From contig NW_004797277.1 in the NCBI RefSeq assembly GCF_000002075.1, forward strand, positions 1,786,934-1,850,933: a stretch of 64,000 nucleotides of DNA, given 5' to 3'. Shown one piece after another: positions 16,934 through 41,112 of the stretch. Position 1 is the stretch's first letter. Each line of letters begins with the position of its first letter. This DNA comes from Aplysia californica (taxonomy: Eukaryota). Under the pieces are notes generated by a model that was not told the DNA's origin, did no database searches, and saw only the letters and a list, made by a program, of their open reading frames with translations. Position numbers and translations under genes: made by a program.

Positions 16934-17024
16934 GTACATTCCACGGAATAAAACCTGGGAACAACCAACAGAAATTGGAATGTCGCCATTGTCTAGATAT
17001 GGACACTCTGCTGTTTACTACAAA
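16934..17024 (+). CDS. ATRN: Attractin exon: Kelch
   Basis: YIPRNKTWEQPTEIGMSPLSRYGHSAVYYK. Confidence 0.92.
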
Positions 17025-17891: not shown

Positions 17892-18075
17892 CCTCTGGAA
17901 ATTGGACTGTAGATGAAACGACTGGCAGTCGCGTCCAGGGTGGATACGGTCATACCAGCGTGTTTGACCACAGGCGAATAAAGATTTATGTGTATGGAGG
18001 GTATCACTCTCAGGGAACCTCCAACTACAAGCTGACTGATAAATTATATCAGTATGACCCAGTACTGAAAGAATG
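17892..18075 (+). CDS. ATRN: Attractin exon: Kelch
   Basis: SGNWTVDETTGSRVQGGYGHTSVFD...IYVYGGYH...YQYDPVLKEW. Confidence 0.93.
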
Positions 18076-18676: not shown

Positions 18677-18831
18677 GTTTGTACTACGTAGCAGTGGTTC
18701 TGCTCGCTACTTACATTCTGCGGCCATGATGAATGGATTGATGATAACATTTGGAGGCAACATCAACAATGATACAAGGCTGGGCCCACAAGCTAAATGT
18801 TTTGCCTCAGACTTCATGGTTTATGACAGAG
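18677..18831 (+). CDS. ATRN: Attractin exon: Kelch
   Basis: SGSARYLHSAAMMNGLMITFGGNINNDT...AKCFASDFMVYDR. Confidence 0.93.
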
Positions 18832-19052
18832 GTAAATGTTGGTACAAGAGGAAAAGAATTACTAGATGAAAATCTGCTGTGTCGAGGCAGTAAATTCATA
18901 TTTAGTAGGAATTCGGTGGTCCGATGCTATAGCAATTTGTGAAAATGTTCCTTTTCCTGTTCCTTTGAATTTTGACTATATGAATCGGATGGAATTATTT
19001 TGAGATATTTGTGTAGTGTTTTTGAATAGTCAGCTATCAATGTCAGACATTA

Positions 19053-19412
19053 ATAATAATGACAATAATAATAATAATAGATAGCATTTGCATTGCTCGA
19101 ATTCCAACTCAACAGCAAGCTTTAGGTGCTTTACAATCTATATTATTACCCCAGTAGGCCTGATAGCATTCTAAAACAATCTGAACTTCCTTGGAAGCAT
19201 TCAATGCCAGCTGCCGTTATGCAGACACTAAAACACTACCATACTGACAAGATCTCTTGCTGTCTAAGGCTGGATACCCATTCACACCTGGGTGAAGTAA
19301 GGAAAGTTAGTGTTAAGTTCCTTTCCCAGGGTTAAAACATCAGGCCTGAGGCTTGAATCCCAAACCCGCAACCTCACAAATACGATTCTGGTAGCCTATC
19401 AACTAGACTACT
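19053..19412 (-). mobile_element. Degenerate tRNA-derived SINE
   Basis: Minus-strand decayed A/B-box head near 19350-19412, core CACCCAGGTGTGAATGGGTATCC, (ATT)n tail. Confidence 0.5.
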
Positions 19413-19479
19413 GATGTGATGTTAGGGGCCAACCGTTCAGCTGACAAATGGTTGTTATATTATTTTTCCTTTTTTTCAG

Positions 19480-19573
19480 ATTGCAATAGTTGGTTTACTC
19501 TTCCAACCCCGGAAATAGTTGGGGACTCAGAAGGTATTGACCGTTTTGGACAAGCAATGGTCAGCGTCAACAA
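19480..19573 (+). CDS. ATRN: Attractin exon: Kelch
   Basis: CNSWFTLPTPEIVGDSEGIDRFGQAMVSVN. Confidence 0.9.
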
Positions 19574-20145
19574 GTAAGTAATTTGTAACTGCTGTTTTAT
19601 GTGTTTCTTTTCTTTAGGATTCTCCATTCTGCTCCACAGCTTACTTCATCTCAAGTTTTGAGTTTTGGGGTTTTAAAATATTTCCTTGGCCTTTTTTATT
19701 TAAGTGAATAAAACAGTGGTTTTCTTCTTGTTTATTCTTGGTTATTTTTGCTAAAATCTTCACTTGATAGTTTAAGATATACATTATGACAGGCAGAAGT
19801 ATGAGGGGGTGGAGGGGTGGTTTTGTTATGTGTTCATTGACTTTTTATATCAGCTGTGTTCGTTCAAAGTATGACTCTTGTTTTCATTTTAATTTTTACT
19901 ATAAAAGTGATTGAGTGATTATTTTCATTATTCGGTGCTCTGTTGTCGGTGTGAGTTATGTCTTTCTCGGACTCCTAAAAACTGTTGTATAATGGGTGAA
20001 TTAGTGAATGACAGTGAAGTATTGCTTTGCGTTCTATAATGAAGCAGATTTATCGTGGGGAAAATGGGTTACTAAGTATTCGCTGTGGTTTTATGTATGT
20101 ATCTCTCAATATTCTATGTTAAATTTTGTTTGTTTCATATTTCAG

Positions 20146-20210
20146 CGTGATATACATGTTTGGTGGTTTCAACTCTATTGCAAAGTATGACTTGCTAGAA
20201 ATAAGAGCTG
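20146..20210 (+). CDS. ATRN: Attractin exon: end of Kelch 6
   Basis: VIYMFGGFNSIAKYDLLEIRA. Confidence 0.9.
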
Positions 20211-20586
20211 GTAAGTACAGTTTTTCTTTGATTTTTGTGTACTCCAGAAGCTGTTCAAGTACTATCAAGAATGTGACAGTTATGATTATGTTGTAGGTAT
20301 AAAGCTGTTACACTACACATGATTATTTCTGTAAGCTTTTAATTGAATGATTTAAATTGAATTCATTTTAGTCCTTTCTCATGTTTTTAATTATATACCT
20401 CTTTGGGTTTTAACATTTAATGAAGCAACTTTTAAAACTGTTTCTCTCTGCCTGTTACATTTCATGTGCCTTTTTAGGTCTGAAAAATCATGTGGTTATT
20501 TAAAAATTTGTAAAATGTTCAATGTTTTCATTATTTGTTATATCTAAAAAAAAAAAAATTAATTATGTCGTTGTGGTTTGTTTCAG

Positions 20587-20724
20587 GAAACTGCTCTTTC
20601 TATGAAAATGAGAACTCCTGCTCCCAAGCTCGACCAGGAGTGAAGTGCTTGTGGGAGGGATCACAGTGCAGAATGGATGATGTGATTGGGGATGAAACAC
20701 ATGACAACTGCCCAAATTCACAAG
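20587..20724 (+). CDS. ATRN: Attractin exon: PSI-like
   Basis: NCSFYENENSCSQARPGVKCLWEGSQC. Confidence 0.9.
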
Positions 20725-21529
20725 GTTAGAAAAAGTTGATGCATTTGTATCTTTTACAGTTTAGCTGTAGTAATCTAGCATGGTATTGTGACAGAATTTG
20801 TTGTTTATTGTTTTAAAAAGAATAATTTCAGGGGTGGGGGGGTGTTTGTTGTAAAATTTCATTTTCCTGTTGTACTTTTCATGCTTTGCTACAGTTTGAA
20901 GGAAAGAACAGGTTGAAAGCTTTTGATATTTTGAAAGGCAGATAAAGTTTAAAACAGAATTTTCATTTTGAGCTCTTCGTGCGGAAGGGTTTTGTTATGT
21001 TCGGTTATGCTTTTCTACAGTAGTTTCAGCTGTTCATAATCTTCCTCACGTCTCTCAATTTCTGAATACAGCTTTTTGTTATGTCTTCCTATGTTGTGTT
21101 TTCATCCTGTTCAAAGAAAACTTTGAGTTGATGGTTTTTGTACAGCAGATGTTTAGAGGAAGGATGTGTTTGTTAACCCTTTCCATGCTGACACATTTCC
21201 ATTTTTGTTTGCACAGACAAGATGACAAGATAAAATGTTCATTCAAGAGAGATTTTAATATATTTCCCCTCTTTAAGAATATCCAACTGTACAAGTTGTA
21301 AATACATCTTTTAGAATGTTTTCTGTAAAGCAGTAGAATAAAATAGCATAGAACAAATTTGGGAGATCACACGTGAGTAAATATGTATGTCTGCACAGCA
21401 TTGAAGAGGTTGGTATAGAAACACTCTCTAAGTTCAGTTTTTCTTCTTAATCTTTGCCTTATTTTTGCGCACAAAGCAAATATTTAAAGGGAAGAAAATG
21501 TGTAGGTTGTAGGGTTTTTTTTATTAGGG

Positions 21530-21817
21530 NNNNNNNNNNNNNNNNNNNNNNNNNNNNNNNNNNNNNNNNNNNNNNNNNNNNNNNNNNNNNNNNNNNNNNN
21601 NNNNNNNNNNNNNNNNNNNNNNNNNNNNNNNNNNNNNNNNNNNNNNNNNNNNNNNNNNNNNNNNNNNNNNNNNNNNNNNNNNNNNNNNNNNNNNNNNNNN
21701 NNNNNNNNNNNNNNNNNNNNNNNNNNNNNNNNNNNNNNNNNNNNNNNNNNNNNNNNNNNNNNNNNNNNNNNNNNNNNNNNNNNNNNNNNNNNNNNNNNNN
21801 NNNNNNNNNNNNNNNNN
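21530..21817. other. Assembly gap (N run), probably hiding an attractin exon
   Basis: 288 N; the flanking exons are phase 1 and phase 0. Confidence 0.9.
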
Positions 21818-22187
21818 GGCAGGAGGTTGGAGGTGTGGGCGGCCAGGCGCTTAAAAGCTGTAGTGTATGTTTTATTGAGAAAAGAATAGGAATATCTTAC
21901 ATCATTTGAGTTCTTGTGATAAAAGTGTATTCTTTGAATGTGTGATATACTATCATGTTTTTACCCGATCTATGTGCGTAAATGTGTCAAAAGGCTTGTA
22001 TCTTAATTGAATGTGGTGATTTTGATGCTTTGGGCTGGATTTCAGGAAATCTTTATCTCAGTTTGCATAAGGATGGAAATGGTTGTAGGGTTGGATACAT
22101 TTTGTTTTAATGAATATAGAGGAGAACACAATTCTTAATATTGTGACCTTTTTTTCTCTTACTATCTATTCATTATTTTCTTTACAG

Positions 22188-22311
22188 GAGGCATTGAACT
22201 GCACTGAAGATGTTGGTCAGTTCTGTGGCATGTTTCTCAAATGCAAAGCTTGTGAGGACCATCCTCAGTGTGTGTGGGACACAAGTGATAAATGTATTGA
22301 AAGGACAGGCA
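22188..22311 (+). CDS. ATRN: Attractin exon: PSI
   Basis: EALNCTEDVGQFCGMFLKCKACEDHPQCVWDTSDKC. Confidence 0.88.
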
Positions 22312-23066
22312 GTAAGTTGGTTAACTATTTCTTTCAATTGTTTTTTTTTTTTTGTATGTGTTTTTTTTGTTTTTCGTTCGTTCTGTTTTGGTTGCTGGTC
22401 CATATTATTGTCTTTGGCAATTTGCTCCCCCAAACGACATTTCGCAGCTTTGTGAGTTTACAGTATACGCTGGCAGTGTTGAGAGACTTGAAACATTGCC
22501 ATTACTGAATAACTGCTGAAAATTTTGGCCACCACTGGTTGATCCATTTCTTTCTTTTCTGTTTTTTTCTACCTCTCTATCTGTCTTTTTCTCCCTTGCA
22601 CCAAACAACCGTTATTGAGTTGGTGTGCTTCTCTTTGCTCAAACACTTTGGAGAGTACTCTTTATAATGAGTTTGTTGGGAGACAAACATTCAGGCTATA
22701 CATTCTAAGGAACAGAAATGTATTAGAAATGTTTGTGTGTCAGTCTAGACTGGGCGCTCTTGAACTCAGGTAATTTTGTGGAGTTTTCAAGGCTCTTAAC
22801 CCTTTGGGATTGGCCATGTCGGAGATAGACCTTAAATTCAGAGGTCCCAGTGTTGATAGGGGTGAAACCCATACTCTTACTCTAAAGAGTAACCTCGACA
22901 GCTAGAATTTTCATAGTACAATGTACATGTTCTAAAATTTTCATAGTACAATGTCAATGTTCGTTCGTAAACAGATGAGAGAGTTCAAAGAGATACTAAG
23001 CTTAATTTGTTATGACACTGCTATAAGCTTTGCTGTCATGAACAGTCTTTATTTTCCCATCCACAG

Positions 23067-23255
23067 GTGCTTTGACAGCTGGAAAGAGCACCTGTGACAA
23101 ACCTTGCAGTGGATTCTCGGGCTGTGAGAACTGCACCCAGGCCAAATGTATGTGGTGCAGCAGTTTGAACCAGTGCATTGACACAAACTCTTATGTGGTC
23201 TCCTTTCACTACGGTCAGTGTATGGACTGGACAACCAGCAGAAGCGCCTGTCAAG
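23067..23255 (+). CDS. ATRN: Attractin exon: PSI
   Basis: CDKPCSGFSGCENCTQAKCMWCSSLNQCIDTNSYVVSFHYGQCMDW. Confidence 0.94.
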
Positions 23256-24237
23256 GTAAGCTCTTTCATTATTTCTTGTCTCCTGGATAAGAAGAAGATT
23301 TGAATGGACCATTTCTTTAAGAAGACTTTTTGTTGCTTTCACAAGCTAACTCTAATGTTTCCTACTCACCCAGTACAGCATTGTCAAATGGAATTATACT
23401 CATTGCGACAGCAATGTCTTGTCAAAGTATGCCTTTGATTGAATGCTGAATGATTAATAAACGAAAAACGGTACTTGATGAATTAGATTGTCGGTGCTTG
23501 AAGCATTTTGTATAGTACCCTCGACATGAGCATTAAAGTATCCTTGAAATTGAATGTGTTCATTTGTGTAAAGAAGGTTGAGAAAGTTCATATAATGTTA
23601 GACATGGAGGAGGAATGAGCTTGAAAGCACTGCTGACGACATTTGATGATTATATTTCATCAAAATGTATTATTTGTCAGTTTACTTCTGTCCATGAAAG
23701 ACGAAGACTCCTTTGCTTTTTAAGAAGAGGGCTACAGCTGAGAGTTTTCTCACTTATTTGTTGACCAAATTTCAACACATTTCACACGTATAACAAGCGT
23801 AGTGGGAAATCTTCAAATATGCAATCAAATTGTAGGAACAAAGTTTTGTTGCTATGGAGACAGTCGCCATACTGGGTTTTGTTGACACGTCTTATTAAGT
23901 TAATATTTCTTTTATTTTCTATGGAAATAGGCTGTTATTTTGCATTCATGTTGGGGAAACAATAGCTCTATGAAAGTCACTGTTAAACTTTTTTCTAAAC
24001 AAATTACATGTAGAAACTTTTTAATGATTTTTTTCTTAAGGTAATATTCTAGGCTGAAAAAAATCTGCGAAAGTTCACACTCCAAACACCACCAAAAACT
24101 ATTCCATATATTGTAAATTCAACAGTGAATTTTATGATGTTACATCTCCTCTTCACTATGTGAAAATTTTATGAAGATTCTATGATTTAAAAAAAAAACA
24201 TTTGGGGGGGGGGTTGTTTGTTTTGTTTGGGGTTTTT

Positions 24238-24716
24238 TTGTAAGTGCTTTACGGCGCTTGCAACTGCATAAGGTCATGCGCGTGGGACACATTAAACATT
24301 TTCAGTTGTTAGGAAAGTTGAATTTTGTCCGGATGGTGGCTGAAGCCTACTCTTTACTTTTCGATTTTAGACCACCAATGGATCTTTAACCTTCACAATT
24401 TGCACACGAGATCTTGGAGATATTTCGCCCTTGTTCAAGAAGGCTAGGGAAAAGCAGGGGTGTGGCAGAAAGACAACAGTAAGAAGGAGCTAATGAGTAG
24501 CAGTAGAAAGATTCAGTATCCCAGAGGAGGGGGCAAAGGAGGTGAGGGGGTGGGGGCAGAAAGTAGAGATGAAAGCAGACGACAGAACATTGCTAGAGAG
24601 AAGGAAAGGAGGTGAAAGAAGACAATTTTAGAGAAGAAAAATGTACACCGCTATCCGAATTCGAACCCAGGACCTATCGCATGAGATGCGAACACCTTAA
24701 CCTCTAGGCCATGAGA
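24238..24716 (-). mobile_element. tRNA-derived SINE
   Basis: Minus-strand head TGGCCTAGAGGTTAAGGTGTTCGC...GGGTTCGAATTCGG (A and B boxes); 3' tail ATGACCTTATGCAGTTGCAAGCGCCGTAAA resembles other dispersed repeats here. Confidence 0.65.
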
Positions 24717-25093
24717 GCCCCAGATGAAAAATGGTGAAGTTATTGAAAAAAGTATATAGCAAAACATTGCTTTGAGAAACGGACTCTTTAAATAACTCAT
24801 ATGTGACAATATGAGGTTTGGGGTGGAGGGGGGGGGGTTCTTATGCGATGAAATAGTTGTGAGATAGGTGGAAGAAGCCAAAAATGCCTACATCTGAAGG
24901 TCAATAATTTTGTCCCAAATCCGAACTCTCCCTTACCCCACTCTCTTTAATCATACCGAGGAACAGTGTAATATTTTCTATTTTCATGCTTCATTCTATT
25001 CTAAGTGTACCATTTCAGTTCCACTTGTATATTGGTATTCTGATTTCTCGTTTTGTGTACAAGAATTGTGATTCATTGGTTGTTTCATGACAG

Positions 25094-25300
25094 CAAACAA
25101 ATGCTCGGCTTTAAAGAATTGTGAAGACTGCCAAGCACGGCCCAAGTGTGGATGGTGCAATGATGAATCTGAGACTGGCACGGGCGTTTGTTTTGAGGGA
25201 GGCATGAGTGGACCCATCAAACTAGTAGACAGCATGCCACAGCTTGATCAAGGCAAATGTCCTGATCTCAGCAACAGATGGTTCTTCAACAGCTGTCCCA
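25094..25300 (+). CDS. ATRN: Attractin exon: PSI
   Basis: KCSALKNCEDCQARPKCGWCNDESETGTGVCFEGGMSGP...WFFNSCP. Confidence 0.94.
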
Positions 25301-26538
25301 GTATGTGTCTCAAGTATTTTTTTAGAACATGGGGAAAGAGTGCGGGGGGTTATGGTTTCACTTCTCACTCAGCTGTTTTCACTGCCTGACAGAAACAAAG
25401 GGTAACAAAATTCTGAGAGACCTCTCCCAAGGTAACCTCTTGGCAAGGGTGGAGTGACCTTAATGCTTCATACTTTGAAGATACAGCAAAAATTAAGATT
25501 TGCACTTTGGATAAATGGCAGAGGTATCTTTTGTGTAATATATTATTCTTTTGGTAGTTACTTTGACTTGATAAAAAGCCAAATGTTAGAGCTGTGTGAG
25601 TTGATTGTTGTTGGGTTTTTTTGTTGTTGTATTGTTATGTGTTCCTGAACAGTTCTTTACAAGCTCACTTGTAATTATGTTCTACAGAATAACCCGTAAT
25701 CTATTTACTTATTGTTGTATCGTCTTAGTATTTTTGTTTCTTTGCCTCTAAACTGAATGTCTTTTTTTCATAATATAACTTAAACGTTATTTATTGTATA
25801 ACATAATACATTTTGTTTTCATGAGTTATTTGTATTTATAGAAGTGAGAAACATATTTTGAGACCTGAATGGCCTTTAGACCAGTTTTCAAGATTTGAGT
25901 TAGCACATGATTCTAAGTCACGGACAAGAAAGAGTACTATGATATCACAGTTGTTCTCTCCAGCAATTGCTGGTTCCCTATTCACTTCCGTGTGGCTTTG
26001 TATACCTGTTAAGTAGGCAGCATATGCTAGATGGCATTTGTTTAGTTTTTAGGACAAGATTGTCTTGGTATGATTCGCATAAAACTATGTATTTCTGCAT
26101 CTGTGGGCCAATTTGTCGGGTCTGTGTTTAAGGGTGTCAATGGTTAGCAAGTGTTCTGATGAGGCTTGCCTTTTCTGCTTCTTTGTAACATTGCAATTAG
26201 CATTATCTGTTCCATCGGAAATGTTATTGTGCAGATTTTCTAAGTGGTGCTGCCCAATGCAGCATGTATTACAGTTTCTGTGCATGGTCAGCCTCTTTCA
26301 ACACTGATGTGTGGATGATTGGATGGTGCCATTAATAAGTTCTGTTTCATTTCAAAGCAATTTGTTTCTTTTTCATCTTACTTTTTCCAAAACACTGTAA
26401 TGTCTAATGTCTACATGCTTTATGTAGGAAATGGTAAGTCAAATTAACAGATGAGGATCATGTGGAAGGTTTTTGAAAAATGATGGGAAGCTTTACAGTG
26501 AGTCCTTGTAACAACTGTATTCTTTTTTTGTGTTTCAG

Positions 26539-26613
26539 AGTGCCAGTGCAACGGTCATTCTATTTGCAAAAATGATTCTGACATTTGTGAGAACTGCACT
26601 TTCCCGATGTACG
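26539..26613 (+). CDS. ATRN: Attractin exon: laminin-type EGF 1a
   Basis: CQCNGHSICKNDSDICENCTFPMY. Confidence 0.92.
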
Positions 26614-26715
26614 GTACGTTTACAAATTATTTTGAATGGGTGAATTGAACCATCTTTAAAATATTTTATTATATATGGTGGACAGAAATAAGTTTTGTTC
26701 TAACTCTGTTTTCTG

Positions 26716-27180
26716 TGGGTGGTTAGTGGGTGCTCTGGTGTGGTTTGCTCCTTTTTTACTTTCAAACCACTATCTTCCTCATCTCTCCTTTTTTGTGTAT
26801 GTTACTTTATTGTAACACCTTTAACTCTTTAAACCCTGAGTTTTTTTCCACCGTTTCCTGGAGTTTTTTGTACAGCAACCTAAACCTGATGTCTCATTAT
26901 AACCCCAAAAGCTTGCCTTCAACTTCTAAATGGCGGAAACAACGGCTTAGTCATTACTAAAAAAACTTGGTTCGGGAATAAGTCCGAAAAACAAGCAATA
27001 ACTAGCACAAAATGAAATAAAACAGTTATCACTAGTATCAAACGCTGGGAGCTTCCGATGGGAGCGTCTGATGGGGAACAAGGTTGTTACTGCGGGACTC
27101 TCCCAGCGTCCGATGGGGTTTAAAGAGTTAATCTTTGGCACTTATATGACATAATTGTGTTGCAAGTGCTGTAAAACTCT
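26716..27180 (+). repeat. Dispersed SINE-like repeat interrupted by a TTAA MITE; other copies at ~48488-48648, 59135-59300, 59940-60100
   Basis: Shared GCTCTGGTGTGGTTTGCT...CTAATCTTTGGCAC...ATTGTGTTGCAAGTGC. Confidence 0.7.
26825..27127. mobile_element. TTAA-targeting (piggyBac-like) MITE
   Basis: TTAA|CTCTTTAAACCC ... GGGTTTAAAGAG|TTAA. Confidence 0.78.
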
Positions 27181-27678
27181 TACAAAAACTGAACTCTGTT
27201 TTCTTGGTGGAATATGGTTGAAATTTGTTTTTGTCTGTGAAGTCCAAGGTTAATATGTGTGTAATTGAAGCCTTGAAAAACTTCCCTTAAGTTGAGATTC
27301 TGTGTCTAAGTTGTTTTTAATGTTACTGTAGGAATACAAGAGCTAGCATCTACTTTCTAGATCTAATATCAGCAACATATTAAAGCTCCACTCACTCGAC
27401 ACTGACAGAGAAAACAAGTTCAGATCTCGAGACTTTGTTGTTTTCGTGAAGACCACTTTATTACGTATGCGCTCATCAAGGAAGTTGCTAGTTTCAAATA
27501 CACAGATACTAAATTTCGGAACAGTACACTAAGCAAGTTTACCGAACAGCATGGGACGTGAGACATGAGGATAACAAGGATAGACGCCACATTACTCCAG
27601 GCATTGTCTGATTCAAAATGTTCCACAGTGTGAAGAGACATGCTGTGAATATTTAATGATGCCCTTATGTTATGTTAA

Positions 27679-27955
27679 CTCTTTATCTCTGGCAACCCGC
27701 TCCCAGCGGCTCTCGGCCGGAACTGGTGAGTCACTGGTAGCGGCTCGGGCACATTTCATACAGCGACTTCAACATCAAAATACTTTTCGGCAAAGTTTCT
27801 TTTACCGGAAGTTCATTCATTAGATCAAGTTCTATCATAATAGGTTCGCTAGTTTCAATTTAATGACCCATTTAGTGACATTTTTGTCATTTTAGGTTTA
27901 CTACCAAAATTTTAGGCCCAGGCGTAGTGGGTTCACCCTCCTTGGAGATAAAGAG
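27679..27955. mobile_element. TTAA-targeting (piggyBac-like) MITE
   Basis: TTAA|CTCTTTATCTC ... GAGATAAAGAG|TTAA. Confidence 0.75.
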
Positions 27956-28029
27956 TTAATTAACATTCCTTGGGAAAACTATTGCGTTATTGAGGAAAAT
28001 TAAATGTAAAAAAGAAGGAGGAATTAATA

Positions 28030-28790
28030 ATAGCCTTTAGAGTAAAAAAAGACCAGTTGTTACCACTATTTATTAAAGATGAGGAGGTGGAGGCGGTAAG
28101 CTCTTACAAGTATATTGGTATAACAATTGATAATAAACTTGACTGGCATCCCCACGCTACTCTTGTGCATTAAAGAGTAAATGAAAGAATGTTCCTTTTA
28201 AGGAAATTAAGAAGTTTGCGTGTCGATAATAAGATTGTGTCCCTTTTATACCATTCGATGATTGAAAGCGTGCTATTATTTTGTATTTGCTGCTGGGCTG
28301 GGAATTGTTGGGTGAAAGATAAAGAAAAATTTTACAGGACCATTAAGAAAGCCAGTAAGATCTCTGGATATGATTATTGCTAGAATCACCACAAGTATAA
28401 AAAAGATAAAAAGTATTATAAACAACCCATCACACCCCCTTTCCCACGCAGTGGCAGATATGTACCTCTAAAAACAAAGAAAGAAAGATATAAAAGAACT
28501 TTTTTACCTTCTAGCATAAGGCTATTTTCAGAATAAGCATAGATGTGTATTGCTCTTTAGAGTATGTATCTATATAATTCCAAAGGTCTTTTTATTAAAT
28601 TTCTGCATGTGGTTGAATGATGCATCTGATGTGATTAGTACATTTTGTCAGCTTTACTTCTCTTTTCATATTGAAATTTAATGAAAGTAATATATAATTT
28701 AAATTTGTATGTATACCTGCCTGTGTTTTTACTGTCCTGTACAGCCAAGAAAAATTTCCATCTAGGATAATAAAGTTTTATCTTATCTTA
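28030..28790 (+). mobile_element. 5'-truncated non-LTR retrotransposon (Rex1/Babar-like) RT C-terminus and 3' UTR
   Basis: VEAVSSYKYIGITIDNKLDW..*..RMFLLRKLRSLRVDNKIVSLLYHSMIESVLLFCICCW; in-frame stops; AATAAAG-(TCTTA)n tail. Confidence 0.8.
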
Positions 28791-28957
28791 AATTTTTGTT
28801 CCCCGAAAGCAGTCTCAAAAGCTACATCTCTTACAATAATCTGACCTTTTATTGTGATGCCTAACTTGCATTTGATAATCATTATGAGAATGAAAGTGTA
28901 AGTAAACATAATTTAAGAATCAAATGTATTTTAATGTGCTCTTTGTTTTCCTTTAAG

Positions 28958-29023
28958 GTCCTCATTGTGAATATTGTGAGGATGGCTTCTATGGGAACCC
29001 GGAGAGCAATGGAACATGCAAGC
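28958..29023 (+). CDS. ATRN: Attractin exon: laminin-type EGF 1b
   Basis: PHCEYCEDGFYGNPESNGTCK. Confidence 0.92.
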
Positions 29024-29689
29024 GTGAGTGTTATTGTCACTAGATTGTGCCAATGTTATAGTGTCAGAATGCTGGATGCAAGGTCATTCTGAGTTTCAGG
29101 ATTATTAAAGTGATCCAGTGTTTTTCTTTTTTTGTTTGTTATTTATATCCCCTTTTTGTAGGCAATGTTTAAATTTCTTTTTGTCTGGAATGTCTGTGGG
29201 GTTTTTTTTCTGTTTGTAGATGAAATGATGGGGTAAAAAAACATTATTTTCACAAGGTATAGATGTGAATGTTTAGAGAAAGATTGTATTTGGCTCTGTG
29301 AATATTGATGACTGGGTGCAAGACTCCAACTAATGCCAAATCACAAAAAGGCTTTTGTCAGTTTTGCATCCAGCAATTGATAGGAAGAAAATGTGGAAAT
29401 TTGTTGCTAGTAAAGCATTTTTTAGAAAGAATTAAAGGTTTGAAATTCTCGATGGCAGCTATATTTTGTTGGAAATGGTTCATTAAAGAAATTGTCAATT
29501 GGTGCAATCGAGTAGTACTTTGTAGTAAAAAACATTTTATGTTTATCACTGTTCTTAGACTCAAAGGAAGCAGTAGAGCCTATCAGTCCATTGGTTTCTG
29601 TAAAATCCAACAACACTAGTTGCATGGATCTCTTATCTCTGTCTTGTGCATTTTTTCTTCATATTTTCACTTCATTTCTTTATGTCCAG

Positions 29690-29783
29690 CCTGTTTCTGC
29701 AATGGTCAAGCTGATTCATGTGATCCTGTTACTGGCAACTGCTACTGTCGGACACGCGGGGTCACCGGCAAAACCTGTGAAAA
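29690..29783 (+). CDS. ATRN: Attractin exon: laminin-type EGF 2a
   Basis: CFCNGQADSCDPVTGNCYCRTRGVTGKTCE. Confidence 0.92.
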
Positions 29784-30789
29784 GTAAGAGGCGTAATGGT
29801 TTGTGTTTAATTGTGAGTAAAGAGAAGCACATTGTCACAACCGTAGCTACTTAGTAATGAGAAAAATCAGAGGGGGAAACAAAAAGGGGTAGTAAAGAAG
29901 TAGTACCTACTAGTGGTGCCCTCCAAATGGCTGTGTCTTGTGTAGTGTTTTTATTTAGCTGTGAAAAGGATATCAATGCCATTGAAGATGAAGTGCCAGA
30001 TCAGTTTTCGAGAAGTGTTTCATACAGTCCTTGTGTCTCTTTAATCAAAACCAAAAAGGATGAATGGTTGACTTTTATTAAATAGGAATACTCAGAATAG
30101 ACCTGAGCATGTATACATTTGGTATATTTATTTTGGGGTTTTGTTGGGGGGGGGGGGGGGGGGGGTTATCAGTCAGTATTAGTCACTGGCTGAAGAAGCA
30201 GATTCTATTTTTGCCTGCAGTTGAGATTGATAGGGAATATGTAAGGAGAATGGAAGAGGGAGAAGAGCAGAGGAGAATGATGTACAGAAAAGTGGAAAGA
30301 CCTGGAATAATATCAAGAAGCTTGTTCAAAGATAAAGAAAAATAGAAAGTTTTTGTCGAGGGCCTGATCCAGGTTGAGAAAGGCAATGATGATGAGGTGT
30401 AAGGAGAAATACAACAACACAAAATATCACCTGTACATATTTTAGCTTTTTTTTTCCTTTCAGTGTCTGTCATGATTTACCCAGTCAATTTTTGTTCCCA
30501 ACTATTTTGTGAAAAGTTAGTGACAGCTTTTTAGATATAGAATGTTTGTTTAGATATAGAACGTTTGTTCACATCTAGTCAGTGCGGTACTTAGTTTAAT
30601 TTTATTCTCCCAGTGATTCATTTTTAGCACATCCTGAAAATTTGTGTTACACATCGTACAACATACCTTACGATTTAATTCGTCACATGTTGTGATTCCA
30701 TTCAAAATACTTTTTAAAATACAATTACACACATCCAGGGATTCAATTCTAAGCGTGTGATTATATCATCATTCCTTGTCTCTGTGCAG

Positions 30790-30845
30790 GTGTGACACTA
30801 CTAACAGATATTCTGGCGACCCAAAAAATGGTGGCTTGTGTTACT
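30790..30845 (+). CDS. ATRN: Attractin exon: laminin-type EGF 2b
   Basis: CDTTNRYSGDPKNGGLCY. Confidence 0.9.
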
Positions 30846-31438
30846 GTAAGTCCAGATAGTTTCTGTTGGTGAAGAGAAATTTTTCAGAACTGAAATATGA
30901 AAATGCTTTTATGACTGTTCTATTTTCAGTGTTGTTACTGAAAGTGTTATGTTTCATATTGACAAAGCAGTTGGCAATATGTATATTTCTTAATGTGATA
31001 TTGTTATTATTTGATCATTTAAAGTGGAAAAGGTATTTATCAGATATATTTACTTTTGAAACAACAATGATTGTTTAAAGTTTTGTTGTAATATTGCACT
31101 GTGATCCTTATGGGGAGTTGTATGATAGGGACTATAATGATTCAACCCTTATAAGTTGAATTATAAGTAATGAATCTGTTTGATTCTGGATTTTAGTATA
31201 AAAAAATAACTTCTCAAATCCAGAATATCATGAGATTTGGAACAATCTAATCCAAGTTTGTGAGGTCATATTTATTTTGATGTAAAAAATATATATCTTC
31301 TGGTATTATTAATTCTAAAAGAAAAAAGGGAGGGTGAGAAAGTGCGCATATGTTGCTGTTAGTCATGTGAATTGAGTATGGATGTCAAGAATAAGGAGGG
31401 CTATCTTGTTTTATCTTTCTTCATTTTTCTTGAACCAG

Positions 31439-31533
31439 ATGAACTGAACACAGACTTCCAGTATACTTTTAATTTGTCCAAGAAAGAAGATGGCAACTAT
31501 ACGCAGATCAATTTCCTGAATGCGCCAACATCT
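31439..31533 (+). CDS. ATRN: Attractin exon: membrane-proximal domain
   Basis: ELNTDFQYTFNLSKKEDGNYTQINFLNAPTS. Confidence 0.93.
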
Positions 31534-31881
31534 GTAAGTCTGCTATACTGTGCCAAATATTTGTCTTAGGGACAGCTAGCAAAGGCAAAAGGGACCTACA
31601 GCTGATGGTTTTGTAGCCCACTTCTTCCCTTATCTTTTATGTTTTTACATGGACAGAACATTTTTCATCATATGACTGATTGTGAAATTATATATTCCAC
31701 TGCACGCAATGTTTTGGATATCTCATTATTTTTCTTAATTGATTTAAATTATTTGAGTTTTCTTATATGTTCAGTCATGACATATGCCAGTTTAATTTGT
31801 TCAGGTTTAATTAAATATTTTATGAATTCCATAATATTCTGAAGCTCTGAACTGCTGAAACAAATACATTATTTCTTGCAG

Positions 31882-31951
31882 AGTGACAAAGACGTTGACT
31901 TCACTCTGAATTGTTCCACTCCTGCATTGATAAACATAACTTACAGATCAA
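31882..31951 (+). CDS. ATRN: Attractin exon: membrane-proximal domain
   Basis: SDKDVDFTLNCSTPALINITYRS. Confidence 0.9.
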
Positions 31952-32528
31952 GTAAGTTTTCAGTATTTTTTTTTTTTTATTAGCTAATTTTAGACTCGCA
32001 TTGGTGGTTTGATATTTATTTTTTGACAAGGGTGTCTGCTGGGGAACCATCTTTGCTGTTAATGTAGAAGCCACTAACAGTGTGAATAGTATACAATAGT
32101 GCACCAGCTTTGTCAGAGCTGTTCATGGAGCTTTAGTTTTGTGAATAATCTTAGGGACATTGTTTATAGATTTATCTTTGTGGAGCAGGACAAGTTTCCT
32201 AAGATACCGTGTACTCCAATTGTGTAGAACGATTTTTATGTTCTATTGGTTGTTCGTGTTTTAGTCACAGCACCACCATCTTAAGTTATAATATTCTAAA
32301 TTCTTATCCGCAACTTACTTTACGGGCTAGTATTGTTCAGCCTATTATCAATCTCTGTCCCCAGTTTTGCCTCCTGTTAGGGAAACACTGCTGTTATCAT
32401 ACTTTGTACTGCCTTACTTCTAGGGAAACACTGCTAGTATTGTACTTTATACTGCCTTATTCTTGAATGTGTTTCGTATACTTCTGTTTGTTTTTTCTAG
32501 TTCTTAATGATTTATCAATGTCTTGTAG

Positions 32529-32680
32529 AGTCCTTCCCAGAGGAGAAGGAGTATGTGAGTGGTCGCATATGTGACTACTTCCGCACTAAGTTTGAACACA
32601 AGAACCATGCCTTCGGGGGCAAAGAGAACACTACCTTCTTGGTCTATGTGTACAACTTTAGGACACCATTCATTTTGCAG
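32529..32680 (+). CDS. ATRN: Attractin exon: membrane-proximal domain
   Basis: SFPEEKEY...FGGKENTTFLVYVYNFRTPFILQ; phase-0 GTAAGC donor. Confidence 0.93.
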
Positions 32681-34751
32681 GTAAGCCTATTTACATCTAT
32701 CTTATGAACTAAATATAAAACCAAAAAAAATTATCTGAAAAACTTGAATGACTCGGCCTCTGGGAAAAGTTTATCAATTTAGAATGGCGCAATAGACTCA
32801 AAATGAAAAAAAAAATTGATGTAATCGGTCCATTTTATGAAAGGTGTAAATTTTATCCACATAACCATCTCATGGGGATATCTTGGCTATGGATGCTCAG
32901 ATCATCATACTTTTGCTAGCAATAGCAATGAAAAATCATAATTTTATCCCAAACACAACGTTACTTCCTTGGACTGCGGTTTAAAAATTTTTTTTAATCC
33001 ATTGATAAAAAGTTATTGGGATTGTTTGTTCCAAACTTTTGGACTTTTGTGTGGGAAAATATCGCCAAAAAGTGGGACGTTACTTGATGTATTTTGAAGA
33101 AAAACTGTGTATAAGTCAGTGATGAATTGGAGCATATGAATGAAACTTGACATCTTTTTAGTGCAGAATCTAGTTCTATTATCACTTTTTTATTATCTTT
33201 ATTACTTTCGATTTTTAAGACAAATATTTACGTGAAAATTTGTTAAATTGCACAACATCGCTTGAACTGTAACCGATTCGGGGGCACAGGCTTGTGAGGC
33301 ATTGTGGAAAATTATGTAAGTTTTCAACTCATCTTTGCTTAAAAACTACTTTGGTCTAATTTTGAACATGCTTGGCAAAAATTAGTTGAATTTACTCTAC
33401 CTGATACCGAAACGATATAACTTCGATCTTAAAAAGAATCAGCGCTGTTCCATGATCACCCCTTCTACAACTTAACAAAGCGGTATAGGGAAAACACGCA
33501 ATGAACTCATTGGTGACGTGTTTAGTTTTAGGTGGCCAATCACATGCCACTTAGCAATCACATGCCTTTAGCATGCCGGCAGGATAGCTTGCTCAGTTTG
33601 TGACCCAGTTTCCGACTAAGTCTTTTATCACTGAATGGTTGATAACTTTAAGTTGATATGTAAAATGTACTGCACACAGAGATCTGAAATTAGACAGCAA
33701 TAAAGAAGACATTTGGAGTGCCTGCCTGGTTGACAACCAATCCACAGCTCTTAGTATTTCAGAAATGGAAGAAAATCATACAAACACAGCAATGTCTCCA
33801 GTTCTAGAAATATGTCGGCATTTGACACTGGCATGTAGTAAGTTTGGCCGCTCCTTTAGTTGGTTGCCAAGTTTCATTAATTTTTGTCTATGGGTTTTCC
33901 CGTAACTACTCAGAATTCCCATAACTATACTCAGAAGAAAGCCACCTCTAATCCCGAACTGCCCAAAAATTACCCCTCACACGGGACCTGATGTTCGACC
34001 CAAAGTGCCACTGGCGATTGGCATTGCTACTTTTGCTATATTTACTTTCATTACTAGAATGGTATATTTAAGAACTTATGGATATACGTTTTTTTACTTG
34101 TAAGTTTCCCTTCTCAGGGTTGTTTGAAACTTAAACTGATTTTGCATTCAGAATTGCGGGACCCTCTGTTCTCGACGCAGGACATTTTATTTTATTCTTA
34201 AATTGTAAAAAGTTACTGCAATGAATGTTTGTGAGAGAGAAACTTGGAAGTGTTGAAATGCACAATCCTCCTATTCAGAAAGATATAATTGAGAATCATT
34301 GTACAAGTGAAATCAAAGCCAGATGGCACACTTTTGGTCGATAGTACTGGGAAAAGATTTTACTCTGACTTCAAACAGAATCTGACTTTCAGTCATTGTG
34401 TTTATGTAAAAAAGTAAACATGAAATGCCCTGATGTTGTTACTTTTGAATTTCTAATCGCGTACTCTAAAGTTGAATCCTTGCGAGTGAGGAGGTAACTA
34501 AATGGTATTTTCTTTTTCCTTTAGCAATAAACACATAAACTCCTATCTGATATAACAGTATCTTCACTCTTATGAGGCTCATGTTGATTTCAATTCTACC
34601 ATATGAGTTGATGATATTGCTGTTAAGGTGTTGCGACTTATTAATAACTAAACATTTGTTTTAAAATGCATTTATTAATGTTTACATTGATGCAGTGTAT
34701 GAGGACCTCTTTATGTAGCTTATGAACATATCATCTTTATGAATTTTTCAG

Positions 34752-34810
34752 ATATCTTTCTCCCAGTTTCCTAAAATTGATCTAGTTCACTTTTTCGTAA
34801 CATTCTTTAG
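34752..34810 (+). CDS. ATRN: Attractin juxtamembrane/TM exon, variant A (predicted mutually exclusive)
   Basis: TTTCAG|ISFSQFPKIDLVHFFVTFF(S)|GTATGT; 59 nt, phase 0 to 2. Confidence 0.9.
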
Positions 34811-36670
34811 GTATGTAAAGGTCCTATGCCCACGTCTAGTGCAAACCCACTGATCTGCTTGTGTCCCGTTCTCTGTAGCTCGGATCCAGTGTCTGCATTG
34901 ATGTTGTGGCTTGGACATGTTGATTTGATGCATGTGGGTGTAGGTTTAACCCTCATTGTAACAATAGCCTGTCTTCAGTTTTGCTTAACGGTTCATTTTC
35001 ATTTCAACATGAGTCTTGTCAAATTGTACAAAATATAACAAAGATGGGGTATTAAATGGTAAATGAAACTGGAAATCAGAAGCTTTCACTTCAGCTTTTT
35101 ACTTTAGAAGAAGATGGCAGGCCTACGTTTAACACCCACATGTGACAAATCAAGTTGTCTAAAGAGGGGAAATCCTTTCTTCTTCCTGTCTTTTTTCTGG
35201 CATTTCATTTTTGTTTCCTGGTTTGTTTCTTTTGTTGCTCCTTCATTTATTTCTTTGTGGTGTCATAAGCCTGTCACTAATAGAAGGTGTTAGATGTAAG
35301 TAGAGATGAAAGATCAGGGAACTGCTTGTGAGATAAGATAAAAGCCGCATTTTGACGCTCAGAAAGTGGTAGGTCGGATAGTAAATGAATTAATTGAGGT
35401 TCAAAATGATAAAAGGATACATAATTTCAGTGTACAGTTTAGTCACACACTAATATTTATAGGTGTCTAATCAATATAGCATAATAGGGAAAACACAACT
35501 GTTTTCCTGTAAGAAAGGTTTATGCCTAGTGAAAACATTGCAGGAGAGAAGTGCAAGATAAATTGTAGGAATTGAATGACGTACATGAAAAGTTTGAATA
35601 TTTTGACAGCTTAGTTCGAACAAGGTATGATATCTTTTCTTAAGCTGGCTGAGAATGGCAGAGAATGAAGATCTGTGATGGCTGCTATTTGTTTTTGGAT
35701 CTAGCTATTTAGGAAGAAGTTCAGTAGATCTCTGCATTGATTCCTTCAAGCCTCAATTATTGTAGTGCTTAAGCTCTGTCCCACCTCAGCTCAGATTTCA
35801 TCCATTTAGGTCATTCAAGGATCCTGAAAATTTGCCGTTGATATCGATGTAGTGGAAAGTTCTCCAATATTTCTCTTGTGGCTCTCAACAACGTGATTAC
35901 TTTTTAGGGGTTGAGTGTTTTTTGGACCTGAAGCTTCACAAATCAACTCACTTGAGAGTTAAAGCTTTGACACAGCCTTCACAGCGCCTAATGCCCTCAG
36001 CCCTTCACAAGGCTTTCATTCACAACCCTCCTGTTCAAGTACCTCTTCTCACACTACTTTCCGTGCCAGCACATTAACATACATTAACATGAGCACTTAA
36101 AGTGGTAAGGGAGTCTCAAAAGGCTATCAAGTTGGTTTTACAAATGGTAGGTAAGTCAAATGGAAAAAGTTTATTTTGTGTTGCAAATTTGCTTGTGTTG
36201 TAAGTGACTTTCAGGCTCTCTGATCCTTCCTGCTATGAGCATCAGTGCTTCTTGTCATTGCCCTTTTCTTATGCAAGTCCCTTCACTACCATGGCTTTGC
36301 ATATTTGTGTCTTGTCAAAGTTATATTGGTCTTGAAAGTTCTCATTGTCTTGCATGTAACTTAGTGTTGGCAACAGATATAGACTAGAGGGAGAATTTGC
36401 AAATTCAGTAAATGTTGTGCTCATTTTGCATTTTGTTATGGCTGTTTTTCGTCCCTTTGTTTTGCTTTTATTGTGAGTGAATCTTGTTGTTTGTTTGTTT
36501 TGGTTTTTTTCTCTGTTCCCGTGCACTGTGTGGGCAGTTGAAGAACAGTAACCAGTTCCCCATGTCCAGCCTTGGTCCATGCTGCAATAATAGGCTCCTT
36601 GTTTTTGTCCATCACTAACAAGACAATCATGCATGTGCCTATGTTTGATGTGTTTACCTTTTCTTTACAG

Positions 36671-36729
36671 ATTTCTTTTGTTCAACCGGATAAAATCAAT
36701 CTTCTTAAGTTTTTTATAATTTTCTTTAG
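36671..36729 (+). CDS. ATRN: Attractin juxtamembrane/TM exon, variant B (predicted mutually exclusive)
   Basis: TTACAG|ISFVQPDKINLLKFFIIFF(S)|GTAAGT; 59 nt, phase 0 to 2; CACTAAC branch-site consensus near 36613. Confidence 0.82.
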
Positions 36730-38405
36730 GTAAGTTAAAACATTTATGGTGTGAAATGTTTATTCATATAACCATGCTAGTGGAATGGAAGAACTGTCTG
36801 AAATGTATACACTCACTCTCTCACTGTTATCCCTTATCATTTCACTGTTGTTGAGAACATTCAAATTGTTTGTGTTTTGAATATTGTCTTTTGAGGTGGT
36901 TGTGCAGAGAATTTGTTTTCTTGTCTTTTTATAATTTAACTGAAGCATGACTTTGACTCTTGTATGTCTTCATTAGTTTTTTTCACTCACCGGTATTCTC
37001 TCCCCCTCTCTCACTCTCTCTCTTTTTTGTTTGTTTATTTGTTACTTTGTCAATAAATGCAAATTAGTCTGTAAATATAAATAAAAGAAGCATAAATTCA
37101 GGTTTTATGTCTACCTTTCTTATGTGCTTTCTCTCAACTGCTTTAATGGTATCAACAGATTGCATTAAGAGTTAAAAGCTGAGACAAAAGATGTGAAAAC
37201 TGATGCTGTTGTCATTCAGGAGATTTTAAGAACAATCGGAAAACATTATTACTCTGGAGTCTGGGTGCAACTTTCAAGATAAATTTGTGCCCGCATTCAG
37301 TTCATTAACAGCTAGCAGACATTCGGTGTGATTTCTTTGTAATCTGGGGTTTTTTTGGTAACATCTTATGTTATCAAAGTCTTTGTTTCATTAGCTAAAA
37401 TCTGATTCATCTAGTTAAATGACTTAATAAATTTTATTTTAATTTCTGTCAACTCAATTCAAGTTCAGTTTTATACAATAGTCCCTAAGTATTTGCGTCA
37501 TCTGCACTCTGTGCATGAAAAAAAGTCACTGCTTTCTTGTAGATAAAGAAAACACTTTATTGAGTATTTTCTGGCAGAGCATGGCTTGGGGTGTAATTGC
37601 ACTGTCCTTGAAGCTCTTCTCTTCTTTTGATGATATTTTGCATAAGAAAGTGTTCTGTAGAGAGAATGTAGAAAAGATAAAAGTTGTTTTATTATTTTTA
37701 AATTCCCATGCATGGAGTACAGGTAATTTACACCTCAGTTTAGAAAAAAATGAAAGATTTATACCTTAGTATGCCCATTCAATCTATTTTATAATCTTTA
37801 CGTCATTTTGTGAAACTTGTATTTTTAAAGTTTCATCACAAATGGCGTTTGTTTCATTTAGTTGAAACTCAATCTCAGCACTTGTCAGTCACCCTCCAAA
37901 TAGCTGTTTTATTCCATCTCTACAGGCACTTTTCCACCCTTTAATCAACATGCAATGCATCTTTTCTTTTACCTCTGTTAATGAGATTGATTGATTGCTT
38001 ATGTAAATGAAGAATACCGATAATGAAAAGTGAAATGACTTTGAAAAGTTTGCTACTTTCATAGTTAATTTTATAAGGCCTGGCAAAAGTTGAAATGTAT
38101 GCTTTGAAATTAATTTGGACCTATGTTAGTAATAACAGATTCATTGTGCATGACAAGTCATGAGTCGGGGGCAGATTATGTTTCAGTAAACTGTTGATCT
38201 TGATTTTGTTATCACCTCTTTGTAGTGTTATGAGTTTTAGGATCAGGTATGTAATTAATTTTTAAAATATATTTTATTAAGCATGTAATCAGGGAAAGCT
38301 TTAGACAAATCCAAAACAAAACTTATGATTCAAAGAATTCTGTAGTGTCTGCAGTATTTTATTCAAACCCAATCCTACTCTTACTGGTTTTTCTACCTTT
38401 TTCAG

Positions 38406-38484
38406 CTGTTTTCTCTCGCTGGTGTTGATAGCAGCAGCACTGTGGAAAGTAAAACACAAGTACAACAGCTACAGGCGAAGACAG
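38406..38484 (+). CDS. ATRN: Attractin exon: TM C-terminal half and basic stop-transfer
   Basis: CFLSLVLIAAALWKVKHKYNSYRRRQ. Confidence 0.94.
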
Positions 38485-39392
38485 GTTGGGACAATTTATA
38501 GAACGTATTTTCAACTGAGGGTTTATGGGAGTCCAATTTTGTTCTTGGAATTTTTGTTGTTGTTGTGAAAGTTTAGTCATTTGAAAAAAAAAATAGAATT
38601 CACCAGTGTCTGTGGGGTAATGGTTTTAAACATTTTGCTGTCACACACAGAAGATGTGAGTTTGATTCCCATGTGTGGGGAATTCTTATCGAGTATTTCA
38701 GTCTTTCTGCTGGGAAGTTCTATCCCTCTCACAGGGTTACCCTGACAGGCAGGGTTGAAGCAGCACACCTCCTAAATATTGTGAATATTGATGACCGGAG
38801 GGTAAAACATCTTCAGTTTTGTGGGTCTTTTTGGTCCTTTTTTATATATACATTTTATAAATTCACATATATTTTAGTTATGTTAAGCTAATTCACTGGA
38901 CTGGTTCTTTTTGTGGAAAATTTCTGTTCGTTCAAAATTATTTTTAAAAATGTTCCTACTTGAAATGTTTCCTTTTAGCCTAGTGTCTGGTGGGGAACTA
39001 AGTACTTCACCTTTGAAATGACCATCATGGTATTAAGTAGGATGGAATCATGCAAGCTGACCCTTGGAGGGTATACTTAACAAGGAGATAGTGTTTTAGT
39101 TTTTATCAACAATGGTAATAGCAATTGTCTCAGAGAGCTTGTGTATTTGAGTGCTATAATTTTTTATTGAATGTTCTTTAAATAGTTGATCGTGGTAAGA
39201 TTTATATAAATTGGTCTTTAAACTATTGACGTGTTACAAAGATCTTGAATTTTTTATTTTTTTTTGCATGCAGCTTATCATGTTCTTATAAGAAAGTATG
39301 AGTTTTCAAGAAATCTTTAATGATATTTTTATGTTGAAAATTTCCAAAACTATGGTGCAATACAGTGGGCACACCTTTTTGTCTTTTTGCAG

Positions 39393-39527
39393 CAATTGAT
39401 GGTGGAAATGGAACAAATGGCCAGCAGACCCTTCTCTACTATTGGTATAGAGATAGATCGCAAGTCAAACCCGATCACAGTGGACAAGAAAGATCATTTA
39501 GATTCAGTATTGAGGCGAAGGAGAAAG
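39393..39527 (+). CDS. ATRN: Attractin exon: cytoplasmic MASRPF motif
   Basis: QLMVEMEQMASRPFSTIGIEID... Confidence 0.95.
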
Positions 39528-40305
39528 GTAGTTTTCTGAAATAATGTGTATTTGTGTACCCATGAGAGATGGAATCTGACTGACAGAGTCATAAATGAAA
39601 TCTTGTATGTCTATCAGGGGATAAAAAAAGAGCTATGGATTGTTGTCGACTGAGATTGAATCTAAATGAAATATATACTTCTGACAAGTTGCAGCATTGT
39701 ATGTCTCCCAGTCAGGGGATTGAAATGGTCAGTTTGATGAAGGGGCAGCCAAAGGAATTTCTGTGAAGTCATGTGAACCTTTGCTAGGATGTATGTCTAG
39801 AATAAACACTCTGACTTGCACTCTATGAGCCATCAATACCAAGCAGTTTATACATGCTGACTAAGTATATTTTATATATAAAATTATTGCTTGTAATGCC
39901 TACAGTAGTTTGCTAATCCTCAGGTAATTCACTTCACATGTATTACTTTTATGTTGGCACAATACCAGGAATCAACAGATCTTAAGTTAATTGTCATTTC
40001 TTTTTTTTACTTTTTGCTACCCTAGAATTACTAAGTTCTATGTGCTTTCTCTTTGAGAAATTTGACAAAATTATGAGTTCTGATGCAAATTCTTTGAATA
40101 TCTTGATAACGGCTGAATAAATAACAACTCCGAATATTCACACTATTTTGATAGAGCAGATAGAAGATTTGGTTTCTAACCTCATAGCCTTAGAAACTCA
40201 AAAACAGTATAAAATGGCGAATAGAAATTTGTAATTCTACAGTAGCATCTTGTTTTCAGTTGATTGCTCTGACTTGTTCTGTTTTTCTTGTTTGTCACAA
40301 CCCAG

Positions 40306-40459
40306 GCGGGGAATAAACCGTCAGCTGTGGCCATAGAACCCTTGAAGGACAACAAGGCAGCCATCTTGAGTCTCATCATCCAGCTCCCCACAGGCGGCTC
40401 AGACTACGCCCCCAGTGGTCAGTCAGGACTGGCTGTGGGCAGTGCTCTAGTCTCCATTG
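40306..40459 (+). CDS. ATRN: Attractin exon: cytoplasmic tail
   Basis: PSAVAIEPLKDNKAAILSLIIQLPTGG...GQSGLAVGSALVSI. Confidence 0.94.
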
Positions 40460-41017
40460 GTGAGTGTGAAATATTAAATTTTAGTCAACACAGCTCATTA
40501 TAGGTATTTCCATGGTGTTGAGGGAGCTTCTCCCTTAAGTAAGACCAGGATCACATGGTCCTTCGAGGATGAACTCTTGATTTTTTTTTTCTTGTTCATG
40601 CTATTTATGAAAGCTACTGGAATTGCACTTTTTGTAGTTAATCTTGCAGAAGTGCTTTCTTTTGTTGGCCTCCTACTTCTGTCAAAACAGTACAGTACTA
40701 GTGAAACAAAGAAGTGTTGTGCTTTACTTTTTTTTATTATGACACTTATTCCCAGGTCTCTAAATGCTCGCAGTAGACATGTTGAAACTGTCCAATTTGT
40801 TTCCCTGATACTTACACAATATCAAAGAAAATTTATGAAACAGGGGTTGAAATGTTGTTGTTATGATGCGCATCATTCCTCGGCTGTCCGTGGTTGGTAT
40901 TTTCATTGGAATAAATAATAACAATGAAAAGGTGATACCATTTTTGGTGTTCAAAGTCAAGTATTTCAAATTGTGTCAGTCTATTGTTATAGTATTCTTT
41001 TTCATTTTGTCTTTCAG

Positions 41018-41112
41018 GATCTCATCGGAAACAGAGCTTAGAGCATATTAAAGGAGAGAAACCAAAGGTTCGGAAAAACCTCACATACAATCATCCGGAT
41101 ACTTGTGCCTGA
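41018..41112 (+). CDS. ATRN: Attractin last coding exon
   Basis: SHRKQSLEHIKGEKPKVRKNLTYNHPDTCA*. Confidence 0.88.

Follow-up and report, generated by a model that had tools for sequence, protein, structure and literature searches.

A probable pair of mutually exclusive exons in the attractin gene of Aplysia californica, covering the stem end, the linker and the outer part of the membrane helix

The attractin gene of Aplysia californica carries two homologous 59-nt exons in tandem, here called A and B, which very probably form a duplicated, mutually exclusive pair giving rise to two full-length isoforms of attractin with differences at 8 of the 19 residues encoded. That the pair is real and in use is almost certain, judging from the way it has been kept in many snails and scallops. 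As an event, this would be alternative splicing of an ordinary kind. The pair is judged real and old, and its functional angle is useful though putative, being drawn by analogy.

Gene and exon layout

The gene lies on the plus strand of the window, by which we mean the whole stretch of 64,000 nucleotides that was analysed, and is the Aplysia orthologue of ATRN/ATRNL1 (Table 1). It is not to be confused with the unrelated pheromone peptide that is also named attractin in Aplysia. A 50-residue query taken from the upstream exon (32531-32680) matched the 1215-aa protein XP_012937027.2, named attractin, with 100% identity. This protein has an attractin-type ectodomain, made up of EGF, kelch beta-propeller, PSI and laminin-EGF modules and the GBD_ATRN stem (Pfam), followed by a single membrane helix, a cytoplasmic helix and the MASRPF motif, i.e. 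the layout of the attractin family. PF24972 was also matched directly on the window exons, with a GBD_ATRN match on the constitutive upstream exon. In mammals and fly, members of the attractin family bind MGRN1/RNF157 and receptor levels are lowered (PMC12752501, PMC8254101).

Table 1. Features of the attractin locus, in positions of the window
Feature	Position	Strand	Remarks
Attractin coding span	8772..41109	+	tblastn of XP_012937027.2 (1215 aa, exon A form); exons 94-100% identity
Constitutive upstream exon	32529..32680	+	final stem-domain strands; ends in phase 0; matches Pfam GBD_ATRN
Exon A	34752..34810	+	59 nt; ancestral, highly conserved variant
TGCATG	34930..34935	+	120 nt downstream of A, in one arm of a 31-nt inverted repeat (34911-34941 / 35132-35162)
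Conserved intron block before B	36614..36670	+	57 nt; kept in Biomphalaria
Exon B	36671..36729	+	59 nt; alternative variant, unannotated in Aplysia
Constitutive downstream exon	38406..38484	+	completes the membrane helix and begins the cytoplasmic one
Next exon	39393..39527	+	carries the MASRPF motif

A preliminary description of this DNA had claimed two homologous, same-phase 59-nt exons with strong splice sites, and both were found exactly where it had placed them, each preceded by a pyrimidine tract and AG and followed by GT (gtatgt for A and gtaagt for B). Both exons are open in frame over 19 codons plus two bases, and the first base of the downstream exon at 38406 completes the split Ser codon. 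When A is followed by B, the frame in B is off by one base, with a TAA at the 16th codon of B, and when both are skipped, such that the upstream exon is joined straight to 38406, a different frame is read. These effects, which were read exon by exon without a joined B model, bear out the earlier claim that using both exons brings a TAA inside B and that skipping both shifts the frame. Only mRNAs with a single one of the two exons, whether A or B, encode the membrane helix, the MASRPF motif and the tail. The pair thus has the marks of mutually exclusive exons, in that the two are adjacent homologues of equal length and phase, each has its own splice sites, and their joint inclusion or skipping is incompatible with the protein.

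The two exons have 38 of 59 bases and 11 of 19 residues in common. No similarity was found when the introns flanking A were compared with those flanking B, and since these flanks do not align, the duplication has to be old. With BLOSUM62 scores against the known A and B peptides, A and B reached 89-100 and all the other open 19-codon stretches between the flanking exons stayed at 35 or below, so that the likeness of A and B is far beyond chance. Also correct on comparison were the replacement in B of Asp by Asn and of His by Lys, and the resemblance of A to the vertebrate segment, both of which had been pointed out earlier.

Among the annotated isoforms of Octopus (P0046-P0048) and Mya (P0174) are truncated ones in which the donor of exon A is read through into the intron and a stop follows after about 10 residues, so that the tail and what remains of the membrane helix are missing. 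The same donor read-through in Aplysia (34743-34850) would add 17 codons and then stop. Such a read-through form may be a soluble or decoy attractin, a kind of form that is known for the human protein.

Conservation of exon B in other molluscs

Equal-length RefSeq isoform pairs that differ only in the A/B exon were found in scallops (Pecten maximus and Mizuhopecten yessoensis) and in gastropods (Biomphalaria glabrata, Physella acuta, Pomacea canaliculata, Littorina saxatilis and Babylonia areolata), and a B form is listed in Argopecten irradians and Bradybaena similaris, all of these isoforms being automatic RefSeq annotations. At the genome level, Biomphalaria, Pecten and Babylonia have the same order of upstream exon, A, B and downstream exon, with both alternatives 59 nt long and bounded by AG/GT. 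A search for B in the attractin loci of related species, which had been proposed as a check, therefore returned an intact 59-nt B in all three genomes.

The Aplysia B peptide agrees with the annotated B of Physella (isoform X2) at 18 of 19 residues and differs from that of Biomphalaria by two residues. The Aplysia and Biomphalaria B exons are the same at 53 of 59 nt, with a pN of 0.04 and a pS of 0.35. The peptide of exon A is identical, at 19 of 19 residues, to those of Biomphalaria, Physella, Pomacea, Haliotis, Ostrea, Mytilus and Mizuhopecten. The surrounding introns are unalignable between Aplysia and Biomphalaria, and neutral decay would thus have erased B. Taken together, the comparisons indicate that B is kept by purifying selection and that both copies are maintained. 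The selection on B that had been suspected from the Aplysia letters is borne out by the pN and pS values and by an orthologous B that is annotated in alternative isoforms of eight other molluscs.

Distribution and origin of the duplication

Heterobranch B and caenogastropod B are identical at 12 of 19 residues, more than either has in common with A. This recognisable common B type implies that the gastropod pair predates the split of heterobranchs and caenogastropods. Scallop B, likewise, resembles gastropod B more closely than it does any A (40 versus 30 of 59 nt, and 10 versus 8 of 19 residues), and Val4 and Asn10 are present in both. Outside the molluscs, the annelid Owenia has two tandem 59-nt copies with AG/GT, one of which (L009:57416-57474) is absent from the annotated protein. 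The Owenia locus also has an extra, diverged upstream stem exon (L009:51564-51794), which lies 4.5 kb ahead of its annotated counterpart, has a GT donor and is likewise absent from the annotated protein.

Whether B arose in one ancestral event or by separate duplications of the same exon in gastropods, scallops and the annelid seems to us an even question. Separate events would explain the patchy spread: a second copy was sought between the flanking exons in Haliotis, Lottia, Ostrea, Mytilus and Argonauta, and in these (abalone, limpet, oyster, mussel and argonaut) there was a single exon and no trace of another, and only A-type forms are listed for Mya, Dreissena, oysters, Octopus and Lineus. 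Scallop B agrees with heterobranch B at only 10 of 19 residues, and recurrent duplication of one exon has been documented elsewhere (PMC9741552). The closeness of scallop B to gastropod B rather than to any A, together with the common Val4 and Asn10, speaks against it. As the exon offers only 59 nt, one ancient duplication followed by losses and a series of repeated duplications cannot be told apart from this exon.

Some species showed peculiarities of their own in this segment. Dreissena has two near-identical attractin genes, and in some of its isoforms (P0070, P0177, P0178 and P0181) the beginning of exon A is repeated as a five-residue insertion, a pattern that points to the use of an alternative acceptor or to duplication of a short internal piece. 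The Mytilus edulis model P0083 has an unrelated hydrophobic stretch where the alternative exon belongs; the genome of Mytilus trossulus has exon A only, with a 430-nt intron, and P0083 therefore looks like an annotation error.

The encoded segment

For the structure of the segment, a 401-aa mollusc fragment (P0016) was modelled with AlphaFold2 on a 36-sequence alignment; the model has a mean pLDDT of 75.5 and values of 81-97 around the exon segment. In this model, the final stem strand (residues 229-235) leads through a linker (236-241) into one long helix (242-288) that reaches MASRPF. The alternative exon corresponds to residues 232-250, which comprise four residues of the strand, all six of the linker and the first nine of the helix. 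The uncharged stretch extends over 23 residues, and with nine helix residues out of these 23 the exon would supply about the outer third to 40% of the membrane helix. The earlier naming of A and B as transmembrane exons was thus right in that part of the helix is encoded by them, and went too far in that, by the model, the exon covers only the end of the stem, the extracellular linker and the first nine residues, in the outer leaflet.

B differs from A at exon positions 4, 6, 7, 10, 12, 13, 16 and 17. The changes in the helix fall at its positions 2, 3, 6 and 7, which in the modelled helix would lie within a 140-degree arc and hence on one face, and helix positions 1, 4, 5 and 8 are invariant. 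Nearly the same helix positions are altered in caenogastropod and scallop B, and all of the B forms are without the His at 3 and the Thr at 7. Molluscs would thus have kept both versions of the segment since before the divergence of caenogastropods and heterobranchs, with the helix changes on one face.

A Foldseek search of the PDB with the modelled fragment returned laminin-EGF folds and a collagenase-CBD-like stem fold; MEGF8 entries were not among the matches listed, and the link between attractin and MEGF8 rests on sequence and not on Foldseek. At the sequence level, MEGF8 chains of known structure (9qqs_B among them) can be aligned to the attractin segment without a gap, with an E value of 7.5e-14.

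Possible function of the swap

The cryo-EM structure of MEGF8, the one relative solved so far, for the stem of which a collagenase binding-domain fold is mentioned, is described in a preprint and shows how this segment is used in a paralogue. The MEGF8 stem rests on MOSMO, a four-helix partner protein, a seven-residue polar linker with a His bonds the second extracellular segment of MOSMO, and helices 3 and 4 of MOSMO provide the surface on which the MEGF8 helix packs. The outer leaflet contains a sterol-like density, and conservation of MEGF8 peaks at this interface of the linker and helix with MOSMO (10.1101/2025.09.11.675358). Aplysia has a MOSMO orthologue of its own (G000:C304:516323-518226; Pfam Atthog, two exons, E about 1e-26). 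The functional step is taken by analogy with MEGF8, as attractin is not known to bind MOSMO. Since the attractin segment is aligned to the MOSMO-touching part of MEGF8, it is reasonable, though unproven, that a swap of A for B would retune the contact made by the linker and the outer-leaflet face of the helix. The partner in such a contact might be a MOSMO-type four-helix protein, a receptor substrate or a lipid, and the cytoplasmic part that would bind MGRN1 is expected to be the same in both forms.

By this analogy, and given the placement of the helix changes on one side, it is plausible that the swap might act as a switch of partner or substrate. How adaptors give MGRN1 its substrate specificity is described as an open question (PMC12752501). 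Against such a switch, overexpressed ATRN, ATRNL1 and MEGF8 were interchangeable towards melanocortin receptors (PMC12752501). We propose, quite tentatively, that the exon pair could be a natural specificity switch for a membrane-spanning ubiquitin ligase, in which one set of partners or receptors would meet the polar His/Thr face and the fixed linker of form A, and form B would replace the His/Thr face, in a similar manner in heterobranchs, caenogastropods and scallops. If so, a single gene would yield two MGRN1 adaptors, with the choice between them made by tissue-specific splicing.

The pair could equally be real and the swap act on sorting, lipid contact or ectodomain shedding instead of the choice of partner or substrate, which we regard as a possible, though not a probable, outcome. 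There is a parallel in Drosophila Dscam1, where the mutually exclusive exons 17.1 and 17.2 reportedly encode the whole transmembrane domain and act through sorting, directing the protein to dendrites versus axons. As in Dscam1, two exclusive exons provide an alternative membrane-spanning part of a single-pass receptor; unlike Dscam1, in attractin the swap is confined to the linker and the outer third of the helix, and an effect on its sorting is not known. Five of the eight changes lie in or beside the extracellular linker and the strand end, and a sheddase site could be affected by the change of Phe-Pro to Pro-Asp in the linker and of Asp to Asn. Without the His/Thr pair, a sterol contact or the tilt of the helix could be different, in keeping with the outer-leaflet density of the MEGF8 complex (10.1101/2025.09.11.675358). 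The truncated read-through isoforms of Octopus and Mya would also agree with a role in sorting, lipid contact or shedding. The one-sided pattern of the helix changes, however, fits a protein contact at least as well. For either role, two natural versions of the segment equivalent to the MEGF8 interface would be ready-made variants for probing recognition by the outer helix face and the linker.

Relation to known systems

The pair resembles the tandem duplicated exon substitutions of human and fly, with their adjacent homologues of equal length and phase and a stop upon joint inclusion, a class that is enriched in plasma membrane proteins and membrane helices, ancient and often recurrently duplicated (PMC5740500, PMC9741552). 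The attractin pair differs from the human and fly catalogues in being found in lophotrochozoans, and the main text of both catalogues (PMC5740500, PMC9741552) does not mention attractin, ATRNL1 or MEGF8. Likewise, alternative exons of attractin, ATRNL1 or MEGF8 were not found described in the literature searched. The statement of the preliminary description that no account of such exons was known holds for papers and has to be qualified for databases, as the RefSeq entries of relatives, unlike those of Aplysia, include both isoforms.

With the MEGF8-MOSMO-MGRN1 ligase (PDB 9qqs, 9qty), mollusc attractin has in common the succession of stem, short polar linker, membrane helix, cytoplasmic helix and MASRPF loop. 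It differs in being a paralogue, MEGF8 having no reported alternative exons here. The situation in vertebrates is similar in that ATRN and ATRNL1 are two versions of one MGRN1 adaptor, and exon A is close to the ATRN/ATRNL1 segment. In vertebrates, however, the two versions are two genes that are almost identical in this segment, whereas in molluscs they come from one gene and differ exactly there.

Splicing control and use of exon B in Aplysia

A combination of frame shift and decay is a recognised means of enforcing exon exclusivity (PMC5740500), and by this general mechanism the product with both A and B would be removed by nonsense-mediated decay (PMC5740500). Two steric or biochemical explanations were ruled out, namely U2/U12 incompatibility, as all sites follow the GT-AG U2-type consensus, and a too-short intron causing steric hindrance, as the intron between A and B measures 1860 nt. 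Docking-selector pairing was also considered, an A-rich stretch at 32706-32742 being complementary to 34744-34759 and 36494-36518; these stretches are short, AT-rich and not conserved (blastn), and no such pairing is claimed.

The intron before B is conserved together with the exon: in blastn, positions 36614-36735 are 83% identical to Biomphalaria L001 41671-41789, whereas the match of exon A between Aplysia and Biomphalaria extends only 8 nt into either intron. A branch-point-like CACTAAC is found in both species (36613-36619 in Aplysia), and inside the conserved block, 40 nt upstream of B in both, there is a TGCATG (36630-36635). In Pecten, a TGCATG lies 25 nt upstream of B, and downstream of the first exon the hexamer occurs at distances of 33-216 nt in Aplysia, Biomphalaria, Babylonia and Owenia. 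The -40 site is thus a (U)GCAUG in conserved intron adjoining an exon, as is looked for in Rbfox-type regulation. By the usual position rule for Rbfox, this layout of TGCATG would favour A and repress B where Rbfox is present. The choice between A and B may therefore be regulated, possibly by an Rbfox-type factor acting through the conserved TGCATG before B and the TGCATG after A. GCATG occurs 11 times in the region versus 4.7 expected (P about 0.014), and its reverse complement is equally common; the excess being weak and not strand specific, Rbfox control is offered as a hypothesis only, for which we rely on the -40 site alone.

For Aplysia itself, the three polyA RNA runs were too shallow, with 12-18 reads on 6 kb, none of them over A or B and no junction scorable; a fourth run turned out to be DNA. 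The Aplysia proteins in RefSeq and in the protein collection include the A form only, with no B isoform annotated, and among the Aplysia transcript fragments searched with the 401-aa query from a relative there was none with B. We nevertheless infer from the conserved sequence that Aplysia uses B, in which case the Aplysia annotation would be short of a B isoform.

It could be argued that B is mainly a poison exon, the stop codon of the A plus B product serving to lower attractin output and the B-only protein being incidental. Joint inclusion does yield a premature TAA, and regulated unproductive splicing is common. A poison exon would have no need of a conserved peptide, however, and in three mollusc lineages B is open in frame, has kept its length and follows a conserved helix pattern; moreover, in the annotated isoforms B replaces A and is not added to it. 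We therefore consider this account very improbable. Least credible of all is the view of B as a relic that Aplysia does not use, a duplicate undergoing decay whose frame and splice sites were kept by luck, as the absence of an annotated Aplysia B isoform and of reads on B in such thinly covered runs is set against the near-identity with Physella B, the low pN relative to pS in the comparison with Biomphalaria, two intact splice sites and a conserved 57-nt block within an otherwise unalignable intron.

Other features of the window

In the tblastn alignment of XP_012937027.2, a run of N (21530-21817) falls between the matches at 20571-20723 and 22188-22322, and residues 626-666 are unmatched there; residues 558-574 and 840-884 are also without a tblastn match, elsewhere in the window. 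Within an attractin intron (27994-28533), open frames resemble a fragment of a non-LTR retroelement reverse transcriptase. Downstream of attractin, at 62854-63742 on the plus strand, are exons of a thiamine-pyrophosphate enzyme that is similar to 2-hydroxyacyl-CoA lyase / acetolactate synthase.
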